64,000 bases of DNA from Macrostomum lignano (lineage: Eukaryota), in contig NIVC01003482.1 of NCBI GenBank assembly GCA_002269645.1, positions 1-64,000 of the forward strand, written 5' to 3'. The notes beneath the pieces were generated by a model that made no database searches, was not told where the DNA came from, and saw only the letters and a program-made list of their open reading frames with translations. Shown here piece by piece: positions 38,452-46,370 of this stretch (position 1 is its first letter; each line of letters opens with the position of its first letter). Made by a program: the position numbers and the translations under genes.

Positions 38452-39423
38452 GTGCAGGGGCTGTGCAGGCGGCGATCTGTGACCAGACGCCGCCAACTGC
38501 GACTAGTGGCCTGCCTGGCTACTTCAAATAACTGCTTACCAGTACGTCTCTACTACGACTACGCCTACGACTGTTCTACTACTACTCTACTAATACTTGT
38601 ACTACTACTACTTCCATTACTACTACTACGAGCTACTACTGCAACTACTAGTGCTACTACTACTGATAATCTAGCCTCAACTGATCTGCAGTGCCCAGTC
38701 GCCTGTGACCAGGGGCTGTGCAGGCGGCGATCTGTGACCAGACGCCGCCAACTGCGACTAGTGGCCTGCCTGGCTACTTCAAATAACTGCTTACCAGTAC
38801 GTCTCTACTACGACTACGCCTACGACTGCTCTACTACTACTCTACTAATACTTGTACTACTACTACTTCCATTACTACTACTACGAGCTACTACTGCAAC
38901 TACTAGTGCTACTACTACTGATAATCTAGCCTCAACTGATCTGCAGTGCCCAGTCGCCTGTGACCAGGGGCTGTGCAGGCGGCGATCTGTGACCAGACGC
39001 CGCCAACTGCAACTTGTGGCCTGCCTGGCGACTCAATTTATTTACTGTTTATGTAATAACATCTATTTACTTGCACTTCTTTTTGAAAAGTTCTCAGTGC
39101 TCTGTTTTAATTTAATATTTGTTCTCAATTCTACGGGCGTAAATAACTTATTTGTTGAACTTTTCAAGATGCTTATTCATACACTTCTACGCTCTAAATC
39201 TGTTTTTCTATAGCACCTAACATCTTTAATATTTTTTGTGCAAGGCTTTAAGCTGCCAATCTTTAACCAATCAGCGTGCTTCAACTCACGTTTTTAACTA
39301 ATTATACGTACACATCTTTACTCAACACTGCTCAGTGCACCCCCAAAAGTAGCATATATATATATTGAAATTATGTTACAATAACTTCACTGCCAATATA
39401 TTTGTTTTTAAACCCGAATAAAT

Positions 39424-39464
39424 AAACCCTGACGAAGGCCCAGTCTGGGCCGAAATATCGGTTT
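39424..39464 (+). ncRNA. Minimal type I hammerhead ribozyme (copy 1)
   Basis: AAACC-CUGACGA-A-GGCCC(AGUCU)GGGCC-GAA-AUAU-C/GGUUU: stem I AAACC:GGUUU, intact core, stem II hairpin, palindromic AUAU in place of stem III; predicted cleavage after C39459. Confidence 0.85.
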
Positions 39465-39535
39465 TTTTCGAACATTCGACAACTGGTAACCTTCAATATC
39501 TTCCGAGTGCGTGGTTTGCAGTTTCAAACTGCCTT

Positions 39536-40834
39536 ATGAATATCTGTACCCAGGACCGGACTATTATTGAGGCTCGCCATGTTTGTCAACAAAATATCTT
39601 CGTATACGAGCTATTCTCCGCCAAAAATCTACTTGGGATAAGCAAGAGTACTATTTCTGCAGCTGAATATTTAAGACGCACGACACTACTACGACTACGG
39701 CTACGACTACGACTGTACTACTACTACTCTACTACCACTACTACTACTACTGCAACTACTAGTGCTACTACTACTGAAAATCTAGCTTCAACTGATCCGC
39801 AGTGCCCAGTCGCCTGTGACCAGGGGCTGTGCAGGCGGCGATCTGTGACCAGACGCCGCCAACTGCGACTAGTGGCCTGCCTGGCTACTTCAAATAACTG
39901 CTTACCAGTACGTCTCTACTACGACTACGCCTACGACTGCTCTACTACTACTCTACTAATACTTGTACTACTACTACTTCCATTACTACTACTACGAGCT
40001 ACTACTGCAACTACTAGTGCTACTACTACTGATAATCTAGCCTCAACTGATCTGCAGTGCCCAGTCGCCTGTGACCAGGGGCTGTGCAGGCGGCGATCTG
40101 TGACCAGACGCCGCCAACTGCGACTAGTGGCCTGCCTGGCTACTTCAAATAACTGCTTACCAGTACGTCTCTACTACGACTACGCCTACGACTGTTCTAC
40201 TACTACTCTACTAATACTTGTACTACTACTACTTCCATTACTACTACTACGAGCTACTACTGCAACTACTAGTGCTACTACTACTGATAATCTAGCCTCA
40301 ACTGATCTGCAGTGCCCAGTCGCCTGTGACCAGGGGCTGTGCAGGCGGCGATCTGTGACCAGACGCCGCCAACTGCGACTAGTGGCCTGCCTGGCTACTT
40401 CAAATAACTGCTTACCAGTACGTCTCTACTACGACTACGCCTACGACTGCTCTACTACTACTCTACTAATACTTGTACTACTACTACTTCCATTACTACT
40501 ACTACGAGCTACTACTGCAACTACTAGTGCTACTACTACTGATAATCTAGCCTCAACTGATCTGCAGTGCCCAGTCGCCTGTGACCAGGGGCTGTGCAGG
40601 CGGCGATCTGTGACCAGACGCCGCCAACTGCAACTTGTGGCCTGCCTGGCGACTCAATTTATTTACTGTTTATGTAATAACATCTATTTACTTGCACTTC
40701 TTTTTGAAAAGTTCTCAGTGCTCTGTTTTAATTTAATATTTGTTCTCAATTCTACGGGCGTAAATAACTTATTTGTTGAACTTTTCAAGATGCTTATTCA
40801 TACACTTCTACGCTCTAAATCTGTTTTTCTATAG
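39536..40834 (+). other. 432-codon ORF inside the ribozyme-bounded monomer (identical copies at 41157, 42778, 44399); coding status unknown
   Basis: ATG to TAG, runs through three in-frame 85-aa repeats; no recognisable family. Confidence 0.3.
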
Positions 40835-41044
40835 CACCTAACATCTTTAATATTTTTTGTGCAAGGCTTTAAGCTGCCAATCTTTAACCAATCAGCGTGC
40901 TTCAACTCACGTTTTTAACTAATTATACGTACACATCTTTACTCAACACTGCTCAGTGCACCCCCAAAAGTAGCATATATATATATTGAAATTATGTTAC
41001 AATAACTTCACTGCCAATATATTTGTTTTTAAACCCGAATAAAT

Positions 41045-41085
41045 AAACCCTGACGAAGGCCCAGTCTGGGCCGAAATATCGGTTT
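41045..41085 (+). ncRNA. Minimal type I hammerhead ribozyme (copy 2)
   Basis: Identical to copy 1, +1621 bp. Confidence 0.85.
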
Positions 41086-44286: not shown

Positions 44287-44327
44287 AAACCCTGACGAAG
44301 GCCCAGTCTGGGCCGAAATATCGGTTT
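44287..44327 (+). ncRNA. Minimal type I hammerhead ribozyme (copy 4)
   Basis: Identical to copy 1. Confidence 0.85.
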
Positions 44328-45907
44328 TTTTCGAACATTCGACAACTGGTAACCTTCAATATCTTCCGAGTGCGTGGTTTGCAGTTTCAAACTGCCTTAT
44401 GAATATCTGTACCCAGGACCGGACTATTATTGAGGCTCGCCATGTTTGTCAACAAAATATCTTCGTATACGAGCTATTCTCCGCCAAAAATCTACTTGGG
44501 ATAAGCAAGAGTACTATTTCTGCAGCTGAATATTTAAGACGCACGACACTACTACGACTACGGCTACGACTACGACTGTACTACTACTACTCTACTACCA
44601 CTACTACTACTACTGCAACTACTAGTGCTACTACTACTGAAAATCTAGCTTCAACTGATCCGCAGTGCCCAGTCGCCTGTGACCAGGGGCTGTGCAGGCG
44701 GCGATCTGTGACCAGACGCCGCCAACTGCGACTAGTGGCCTGCCTGGCTACTTCAAATAACTGCTTACCAGTACGTCTCTACTACGACTACGCCTACGAC
44801 TGCTCTACTACTACTCTACTAATACTTGTACTACTACTACTTCCATTACTACTACTACGAGCTACTACTGCAACTACTAGTGCTACTACTACTGATAATC
44901 TAGCCTCAACTGATCTGCAGTGCCCAGTCGCCTGTGACCAGGGGCTGTGCAGGCGGCGATCTGTGACCAGACGCCGCCAACTGCGACTAGTGGCCTGCCT
45001 GGCTACTTCAAATAACTGCTTACCAGTACGTCTCTACTACGACTACGCCTACGACTGTTCTACTACTACTCTACTAATACTTGTACTACTACTACTTCCA
45101 TTACTACTACTACGAGCTACTACTGCAACTACTAGTGCTACTACTACTGATAATCTAGCCTCAACTGATCTGCAGTGCCCAGTCGCCTGTGACCAGGGGC
45201 TGTGCAGGCGGCGATCTGTGACCAGACGCCGCCAACTGCGACTAGTGGCCTGCCTGGCTACTTCAAATAACTGCTTACCAGTACGTCTCTACTACGACTA
45301 CGCCTACGACTGCTCTACTACTACTCTACTAATACTTGTACTACTACTACTTCCATTACTACTACTACGAGCTACTACTGCAACTACTAGTGCTACTACT
45401 ACTGATAATCTAGCCTCAACTGATCTGCAGTGCCCAGTCGCCTGTGACCAGGGGCTGTGCAGGCGGCGATCTGTGACCAGACGCCGCCAACTGCAACTTG
45501 TGGCCTGCCTGGCGACTCAATTTATTTACTGTTTATGTAATAACATCTATTTACTTGCACTTCTTTTTGAAAAGTTCTCAGTGCTCTGTTTTAATTTAAT
45601 ATTTGTTCTCAATTCTACGGGCGTAAATAACTTATTTGTTGAACTTTTCAAGATGCTTATTCATACACTTCTACGCTCTAAATCTGTTTTTCTATAGCAC
45701 CTAACATCTTTAATATTTTTTGTGCAAGGCTTTAAGCTGCCAATCTTTAACCAATCAGCGTGCTTCAACTCACGTTTTTAACTAATTATACGTACACATC
45801 TTTACTCAACACTGCTCAGTGCACCCCCAAAAGTAGCATATATATATATTGAAATTATGTTACAATAACTTCACTGCCAATATATTTGTTTTTAAACCCG
45901 AATAAAT

Positions 45908-45948
45908 AAACCCTGACGAAGGCCCAGTCTGGGCCGAAATATCGGTTT
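45908..45948 (+). ncRNA. Minimal type I hammerhead ribozyme (copy 5)
   Basis: Identical to copy 1; predicted cleavage after C45943. Confidence 0.85.
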
Positions 45949-46025
45949 TTTTCGAACATTCGACAACTGGTAACCTTCAATATCTTCCGAGTGCGTGGTT
46001 TGCAGTTTCAAACTGCCTTATGAAT

Positions 46026-46370
46026 ATCTATCTATCTATCTATCTATCTATCTATCTATCTATCTATCTATCTATCTATCTATCTATCTATCTATCTATC
46101 TATCTATCTATCTATCTATCTATCTATCTATCTATCTATCTATCTATCTATCTATCTATCTATCTATCTATCTATCTATCTATCTATCTATCTATCTATC
46201 TATCTATCTATCTATCTATCTATCTATCTATCTATCTATCTATCTATCTATCTATCTATCTATCTATCTATCTATCTATCTATCTATCTATCTATCTATC
46301 TATCTATCTATCTATCTATCTATCTATCTATCTATCTATCTATCTATCTATCTATCTATCTGTCTATCTA
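46026..46370. repeat. (TATC)n microsatellite at the 3' junction of the hammerhead array
   Basis: Directly visible; overlaps the array end (ATATCT). Confidence 0.98.

Follow-up and report, generated by a model that had tools for sequence, protein, structure and literature searches.

A tandem 1621-bp unit carrying a predicted Penelope-type minimal hammerhead in Macrostomum lignano: probably a young non-autonomous retroelement of (TATC)n microsatellites

Minimal hammerhead ribozymes were found in Penelope-like elements (PLEs) by means of a dedicated descriptor (Cervera & de la Pena, 2014, PMC4209133). These motifs are of type I and are characterised by an unpaired base between A9 and G10.1, a G10.1-C11.1 pair, a palindrome at 15.2-16.2, a long helix II and a short helix I. 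PLEs display 5' truncation, partial head-to-tail tandems and a bias towards insertion in microsatellites, and non-autonomous PLE derivatives with multicopy head-to-tail insertions have also been documented (Craig et al., 2021, PMC8557442). The metazoan retrozymes that lack long terminal repeats (LTRs) give RNAs of 170-400 nt (Cervera & de la Pena, 2020, PMC7229834) and have consensus lengths of 51-972 bp (Li et al., 2026, bioRxiv 10.64898/2026.07.22.740005). It has been proposed that they are mobilised by PLE reverse transcriptases (RTs) via multimeric cDNA (PMC7229834; bioRxiv 10.64898/2026.07.22.740005), and it has been argued that they are themselves non-autonomous PLE derivatives (bioRxiv 10.64898/2026.07.22.740005). 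Here we describe a head-to-tail array in a 64,000-nt stretch of the Macrostomum lignano genome (contig NIVC01003482.1 of assembly GCA_002269645.1, positions 1 to 64,000 of the forward strand; referred to below as the window). The array is probably the product of a young, non-autonomous, PLE-type or 'retrozyme-like' retroelement that inserted as multimeric cDNA at a (TATC)n microsatellite. Literature searches yielded no paper on hammerheads or PLEs in Macrostomum, and none on transposable elements of M. lignano that describes this family.

The whole insertion lies on the + strand at 38455-46029 and comprises a truncated copy, four full units of 1621 bp and 86 nt of a further unit, all in exact register. 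An earlier note on this DNA, made from the letters of the sequence, had given the same right-hand limit; its left-hand limit of 38452 has to be moved to 38455, the three nucleotides at 38452-38454 being a GTG filler at the 5' junction that separates the truncated copy from the flanking sequence (flank X). The 41-mer AAACCCTGACGAAGGCCCAGTCTGGGCCGAAATATCGGTTT has five exact occurrences on the + strand, at 39424, 41045, 42666, 44287 and 45908, and the constant interval of 1621 bp between them agrees, as does their number, with the five evenly spaced hammerhead motifs of that note. No match to the 41-mer was obtained in 100 dinucleotide shuffles, even with 3 mismatches tolerated. The first copy (38455-39459; 1005 nt) is truncated at its 5' end, corresponds to unit positions 617-1621 and is 100% identical to 40076-41080. 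It is followed, again as had been noted, by perfect full copies running from hammerhead to hammerhead (39460-41080, 41081-42701, 42702-44322 and 44323-45943), each of 1621 bp and with 0 differences among the four. The last copy extends 86 nt beyond the fifth predicted cleavage site and ends at 46029.

The five motifs occupy 39424-39464, 41045-41085, 42666-42706, 44287-44327 and 45908-45948, all on the + strand, and cleavage is predicted 3' of C39459, C41080, C42701, C44322 and C45943, respectively. The catalytic core is intact in 5/5 copies, with C3U4G5A6C7G8A9 (CUGACGA), G12A13A14, A15.1, U16.1 and the cleavage-site nucleotide C17. Helix I consists of 5 bp (AAACC/GGUUU) with an open end that is extendable past one mismatch, and helix II of 6 bp (GGCCCA/UGGGCC) with a 3-nt loop, GUC, and one unpaired A ahead of it. 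After G12-A13-A14 the palindrome AUAU (A15.1-U15.2-A16.2-U16.1) replaces helix III. In the minimum-free-energy fold the two helices stand around an open core, as type I topology requires. The earlier note had read the complete core, the 5-bp stem I and the AUAU in all copies in the same way, and its likening of the motif to the minimal type I hammerheads of PLEs holds; its stem II of 5-6 bp is present and is refined here to the bulged 6-bp helix just described. Every trait listed for the PLE motifs (PMC4209133) is found in that of the window: the full core, the unpaired nucleotide between A9 and G10.1, the G10.1-C11.1 pair, a 6-bp helix II, a 5-bp helix I without a closed loop 1 and a palindromic AUAU through which two ribozymes could pair. 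As in PLEs, the motif is situated in the terminal region of head-to-tail retroelement copies. A relaxed type I descriptor, allowing either core variant, an optional bulge, a helix II of at least 4 bp, 0-8 nt for helix III and a helix I of at least 4 bp, found no site on either strand of the window besides these five, and no match in 30 shuffles. Judged by these features, the motif is a bona fide PLE-type minimal hammerhead. The surrounding unit differs from a PLE in having no RT/GIY-YIG open reading frame (ORF) between ribozymes, which are spaced 1.6 kb apart as opposed to about 3 kb, and in that its copies are identical whereas PLE copies are highly variable. The single ORF with RT and GIY-YIG endonuclease that defines an autonomous PLE is absent from it.

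Motifs of this architecture were also met in metagenomes. A scan for the core together with the same helix II base returned 111 contigs, with a chance expectation of about two, and the commonest form, ...GCAA-CUGAAGA-A-GGCCC-UUUU-GGGGCC-GAAA-CG-UU-UUGC, has the same architecture as the window hammerhead. The contigs (L003-L113; MKWU01..., JGIcombinedJ30088..., Ga0209544..., Ga0123357...) come from host-associated metagenomes, and one hammerhead family, CTGAAGAAGGCCCTTTTGGGGCCGAAACGTT flanked by GCAA and TTGC, is present on at least 66 of them; L012 and L053 each contain an inverted pair of hammerheads about 130 bp apart. On contig L108 a minimal hammerhead lies 240 nt upstream of a decayed PLE, an RT and GIY-YIG ORF pair in which the RT motifs SFDVVSLFT, GTAMGSPVS, RYVDDT and LPFLDV precede the GIY-YIG ORF. 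Its Pfam matches are below threshold, though in the correct order. Presumably the metagenome hammerhead family stems from PLE copies of the host animals.

The monomers of the earlier note are bounded by the ribozyme cut, but the element has its own 3' end 86 nt downstream of the ribozyme. The 3'-terminal module (39460-39545 in the first full unit, + strand) contains a hairpin, GCAGUUUCAAACUGC, at 39518-39532 and terminates in ...CUUAUGAAUAUC(U), that is, ...GAAUAUC. In the array the terminus abuts a (TATC)n microsatellite (46025-46375, + strand), with TATCT microhomology at the junction, and it is in this tract that the priming nick is presumed to have been made. AATATC, a hexamer matching the unit of the target microsatellite, occurs 4 times within 145 nt (39454, 39495, 39539 and 39593). 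These offsets recur in every unit, the remainder of which is free of the hexamer. One copy coincides with the helix III segment and C17 of the ribozyme, another with the 3' terminus of the element, and that at 39593 lies just beyond the 86-nt module. This clustering suggests that the template may pair there with a primer, the nicked (GATA)n strand.

Further evidence for retrotransposition came from two other M. lignano loci of assembly GCA_002269645.1, L001 (NIVC01002743.1) and L002 (NIVC01000001.1), which were reached through a protein search with the 432-amino-acid ORF of the unit. Both contain the same element at about 99.5-99.8% identity, with flanks and genes unlike those of the window locus. 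The L001 array comes after a (TATC)n tract; its first copy begins at about unit position 894, and behind it stand three complete units and part of a further one, which is cut off by an assembly gap. At L002 a (TATC)n tract leads into a solitary truncated copy, made up of positions 645-1621 and 1-86, and a second (TATC)n tract into an array whose 5' junction is identical to that of the solitary copy. This array contains a unit interrupted by another transposable element, one unit minus a 255-bp repeat and one complete unit before it closes with the 86-nt end, and is succeeded by more than 7.8 kb of (TATC)n. The interrupting sequence (L002 7514-8733) is an insert of about 1.2 kb resembling a miniature inverted-repeat transposable element (MITE). 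Its terminal inverted repeats read CAGTGTTGGGCAAGTTACTC..., the duplicated target is the 8-bp CTTACCAG, and its appearance is that of a non-autonomous DNA transposon of the hAT type. All observed 3' junctions read ...CTGCCTTATGAATATC/TATCTATC, the element end being joined directly to (TATC)n, while the 5' junctions vary by locus, at unit position 617 in the window, 645 at L002 and about 894 at L001. The insertion anatomy of PLEs, with variable 5' ends, tandem units and flanking (TATC)n, is seen at three loci. Target-primed reverse transcription classically leaves 3' ends that are fixed, 5' truncations that vary and microhomology at the junctions, and these insertions bear that signature. Between loci the units are distinguished by two substitutions and one indel of an AT dinucleotide, uniform inside each array, and the residual differences between units are single-base homopolymer deletions of the PacBio-error type. 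Identity within arrays together with array-specific variants fits one template per array. The family is dispersed and, to judge from these identities, very young; since its copies are essentially identical, the element is probably active at present.

The same anatomy could be produced by a SINE-like element (a short interspersed element) moved by a microsatellite-specific long interspersed element (LINE) that reads the 3' hairpin and a (TATC)n-like tail, the hammerhead being a passenger or processing signal and no PLE being involved. A fixed 3' end with the hairpin at 39518-39532 followed by a short target-matching tail, and 5' truncation with microhomology, would suit such a pair well, and there is a LINE RT fragment in the window at 9.6-11.2 kb. 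We nevertheless consider this explanation unlikely. With its bulged nucleotide and palindromic 15.2-16.2 the ribozyme is specifically a PLE minimal hammerhead, multimeric head-to-tail insertion is typical of PLEs and retrozymes and not of LINE/SINE pairs, and the unit shows no similarity to the remainder of the 64-kb window, the LINE fragment included.

A second possibility, which we regard as improbable to a still greater degree, is a macrosatellite amplified at the DNA level by unequal crossing-over or replication slippage and spread through segmental duplication, with a fossil hammerhead. The genome is extremely rich in tandem repeats and contains 180 Mb of duplicated blocks (PMC5730564), and the two identical 5' junctions at L002, with the unit lacking a 255-bp repeat, indicate that DNA-level rearrangement does occur. 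Such a process is at odds with three different 5' truncation points combined with one identical 3' terminus in different genomic contexts, and with a catalytic core that is intact in every copy. Also against it are the solitary truncated copy and the fact that truncated units cannot regenerate full ones: positions 87-616 are held by the full units and missing from the truncated copies, which excludes unequal exchange from a single truncated insert. The presence of these positions in the full units means, under the retroelement interpretation, that the inserted cDNA was longer than one unit.

The flanks of the window array are themselves duplicated. Upstream, a (CTAT)n microsatellite (36226-37549), identical in repeat and in strand (+) to the downstream tract, is followed by flank X (37571-38451, + strand), which over 881 bp is 100% identical (881/881) to X' (46430-47310) on the far side of the array; X' continues into unique sequence and exon 1 of a G protein-coupled receptor (GPCR) gene (ATG at 47443). 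The spacers between microsatellite and X, of 21 nt on the upstream and 54 nt on the downstream side, differ by three indels. The arrangement is most simply read as a target-site duplication of about 1.27 kb, in which the first nick would have fallen within the microsatellite, 350 bp from its edge, and the second-strand junction would lie at ...AACTAACT. Alternatively, the duplication may have come from template switching, from ectopic exchange involving duplicated segments of chromosomes or from a fault in the assembly. L001 and L002 are without a flank duplication because both junctions of each lie inside the microsatellite. Sequence adjoining other (TATC)n tracts of the window (upstream of 36226 and at 54195-54485) shows no element ends, and a homology search with the GPCR exon, by which this locus or an empty version of it was sought, retrieved no M. 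lignano orthologue from the protein database. The perfect identity of the four units and of the duplicated 881-bp flanks could raise the suspicion that a single copy, or at any rate fewer copies, had been expanded or mis-joined in assembly, the more so as repeats in this genome are hard to assemble (PMC5730564). This seems very improbable, given that multi-unit arrays of the same element occur at two other loci of the PacBio assembly and that the junctions of X with the array and of the array with (TATC)n are unique sequences that reads must contain.

The unit is dominated by an internal minisatellite of 255-bp period, rich in ACT/CTA triplets and present in 3.7 copies (39714-40654, with equivalents at 41335-42275, 42956-43896 and 44577-45517 and a partial one at 38455-39033, all + strand). 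It makes up about 940 of the 1621 bp, or two-thirds. The AT-rich segment ending at the ribozyme has polyA-like overlapping AATAAA hexamers (39417-39426), and two CCAAT boxes (39256-39260 and 39267-39271) and a (TA)n TATA-like box (39353-39366) resemble a promoter; these + strand features are motifs to which a function may be ascribed on their sequence. No tRNA-like sequences or inverted repeats were found in the unit. The sole ORF of at least 45 amino acids in any frame is of low complexity and encodes 432 amino acids (39536-40834, + strand). Its ATG is in the last 10 nt of the element, and the ORF is therefore complete only in a tandem or circular form. Pfam gave no domain above cut-off for it, and RT and endonuclease domains are absent. 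Exact-protein look-ups gave no record for this ORF or for one in flank X, and among 5.8 billion proteins its only relatives are two M. lignano hypothetical proteins, P0001 (100% identity) and P0002 (97%).

Deposited M. lignano gene models were built from StringTie/TACO transcripts derived from RNA-seq (PMC5730564), and for this reason P0001 and P0002 indicate transcription of the + strand of the element. P0002 (BOX15_Mlig029014g1; L001 10001-16085) is a chimera in which a host repeat-protein gene is spliced into the first, truncated L001 unit at the acceptor ...TGTGACCAG/ACGCC; the model ends at the stop of the unit ORF, so that the element has been exonised. The array could on these grounds be taken for a tandem cluster of coding genes, each with its own CCAAT/TATA and AATAAA signals and encoding a Thr/Leu/Cys-rich repeat protein of 432 amino acids, with the hammerhead acting in mRNA 3'- or 5'-end processing: the ORF spans 80% of each unit, promoter-like and polyA-like motifs are present and NCBI gene models exist. 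We hold the chance of this to be very slight. Besides the want of an above-threshold domain and of homologues other than the two M. lignano models, the ATG straddles the element end and P0002 is chimeric with a host gene. In addition, the diverged first 255-bp repeat presents the same nucleotides in a different frame from the canonical repeats, from which it is set apart by indels of 20, 1 and 4 nt. The ORF was rejected as a real gene on account of this inconsistency of reading frame among the repeats; it is judged to be fortuitous and the unit to be non-coding. PLE motif regular expressions and tblastn with the L108 PLE RT found nothing in the window, L001 or L002. The unit is non-autonomous, as the earlier note had it: the ORF survey, Pfam and tblastn all leave it without RT and endonuclease ORFs.

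How might such a unit be propagated? A + strand transcript from a tandem source would serve as template for an RT acting in trans, most likely that of an autonomous PLE. The transcript might be copied as an uncleaved multimer, or it might first be cleaved by the hammerheads acting as dimers and ligated into a 1621-nt circle. Priming would occur at a nick in the (GATA)n strand of the (TATC)n microsatellite, through pairing with UAUC(U) at unit positions 82-86, and reverse transcription would exceed one unit length and stop early, leaving a 5'-truncated copy, n full copies and the final 86 nt. Here we infer both the identity of the RT and the form of the template. The insertions all extend 86 nt beyond the cleavage site and none stops at it, which implies that the template was not a hammerhead-cleaved linear monomer; it would be either an uncleaved multimeric transcript or a religated circle, and the data fit both alike. 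The rolling-circle reverse transcription put forward in the earlier note thus survives as far as the anatomy of multimer retrotransposition is concerned, but is indistinguishable from the copying of an uncleaved multimeric transcript. The fuller proposal, in which a PLE RT copies a cut-and-ligated 1621-nt RNA circle in rolling-circle fashion from a (GATA)n nick paired with one of the clustered AAUAUC sites, is a tentative one and in our view rather doubtful. It is more speculative still that reiterative copying of AUAUC by a telomerase-related RT helps to build the kb-long (TATC)n tracts beside the copies.

Several observations weigh against a PLE-type retroelement with a working ribozyme. Rfam models, at the gathering score and at E<=10, found no hammerhead or other ribozyme on either strand, including in a search of a 101-nt stretch, so that the scan for type I hammerheads foreseen in the earlier note recovers the five sites with the relaxed descriptor and none with Rfam. 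We read this as a limit of the models rather than as evidence against the motif, since the canonical helix III hairpin is absent here and the minimal hammerheads of PLEs needed a special descriptor (PMC4209133). Those hammerheads cleave weakly in vitro, and then only in dimeric or trimeric constructs (PMC4209133), and the activity of the ribozyme in the array is something that we infer from its sequence. The near-identity of all copies leaves no covariation support for the ribozyme within the family. The predicted fold of the monomer, with 48% of nucleotides paired (z = -3.4), is looser than the described retrozyme circles. A duplication of about 1.27 kb is far above the usual length of a target-site duplication, and the 20-55 nt next to the microsatellite differ between its two sides. 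Finally, the same DNA signature is obtainable from a microsatellite-specific LINE. A further calculation, RNAcofold of two hammerhead copies, gave a duplex dominated by the near-palindromic helix II, so that dimerisation through helix III was not probed by it. Taken over all the evidence, the identification of a retroelement and of a ribozyme appears well supported, and a circular RNA and dependence on a PLE RT are plausible.

Comparison with the other described systems places the element between several groups. With the metazoan non-LTR retrozymes (PMC7229834; bioRxiv 10.64898/2026.07.22.740005) it shares non-autonomous tandem repeats, one type I hammerhead per non-coding repeat and a low GC content (44%). 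It departs from them in a unit length of 1621 bp, beyond the reported 51-972 bp, in a minimal hammerhead with open helix I and 3-nt loop 2 where theirs are canonical with contacts between loops 1 and 2, and in its defined 3' end 86 nt past the ribozyme, strict association with (TATC)n and predicted RNA that is 48% paired. The label 'retrozyme-like' used in the earlier note is therefore apt for the tandem, non-coding, hammerhead-bearing repeats, but the element is nearer to a non-autonomous PLE than to retrozymes of the classical kind, whose hammerheads are canonical. That note was also right that the unit exceeds typical animal retrozymes, with the qualification that most of the size is the 255-bp minisatellite: at 1621 bp it is the largest that we found documented for animal retrozyme-like repeats, two-thirds of it being minisatellite. 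MRC1 and other Chlamys-dependent PLE derivatives (PMC8557442) are similar in having no ORF, pseudo-LTRs, multicopy head-to-tail insertions, 5' truncation, a microsatellite bias and a length inflated by internal tandem repeats; unlike the present element they are green algal and mostly free of hammerheads. The plant LTR retrozymes (PMC4918200) also are non-autonomous, with hammerhead-delimited RNAs of up to about 1 kb for which circular transposition intermediates have been proposed. Their type III hammerheads in true LTRs, primer binding sites and polypurine tracts, 4-bp target-site duplications and Gypsy dependence have no counterpart here.

The array lies about 1.4 kb upstream of the start codon of a serotonin-receptor-like GPCR, whose exons at 47443-47706 and 59278-60597 belong to the rhodopsin family (7tm_1, E=2e-25) and are nearest to 5-HT receptors of annelids and flatworms. 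Small single-pass membrane proteins form a tandem family (3851-4327 on the - strand, 6146-6589, 12889-13341, 19244-19627, 26206-26592 and 33148-33732) that has the conserved Cys pattern F.CPE...KSYCCG...CC, with a weak Shisa_N match in one member. Other mobile-element sequences in the window are a LINE-type RT fragment (9612-11172; RVT_1, YADD), a tyrosine-recombinase-like ORF (20870-21307) and a mariner/Mos1 HTH_48 fragment (35782-36147, - strand) directly upstream of the long (CTAT)n tract. Minisatellites with periods of 14-55 bp are exceptionally dense (for example 9112-9627, 14762-15667, 16153-16633, 48535-49402, 50731-51624, 54994-55946 and 62141-64000), as are kb-scale tetranucleotide microsatellites, and many of the window's repeats create long spurious ORFs.

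The kind of element and the ribozyme were already known; the interest of this new member lies in its youth, its clean junctions and a tractable host. The family bears on how PLEs and animal retrozymes transpose, what role the minimal hammerhead has and why insertion yields head-to-tail multimers. The evidence that it offers is clean: the copies have hardly diverged, their 3' end is precise, one kind of microsatellite is the only target and the arrays must have been inserted as multimeric cDNA. In addition, 3' ends lying 86 nt past the cleavage site leave circles or uncleaved multimers as the possible templates. In the 2017 annotation the element was left unmasked as a repeat, and it gave rise to 'hypothetical protein' models and a chimeric model of a host gene. 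Transgenesis and inbred lines exist for M. lignano, and they make assays of marked elements and of RNA circles feasible. If the rolling-circle proposal is correct, the 1621-nt circle would be the largest 'retrozyme' circle of any animal, and M. lignano would be the first system to open PLE-type rolling-circle retrotransposition to experimental study.

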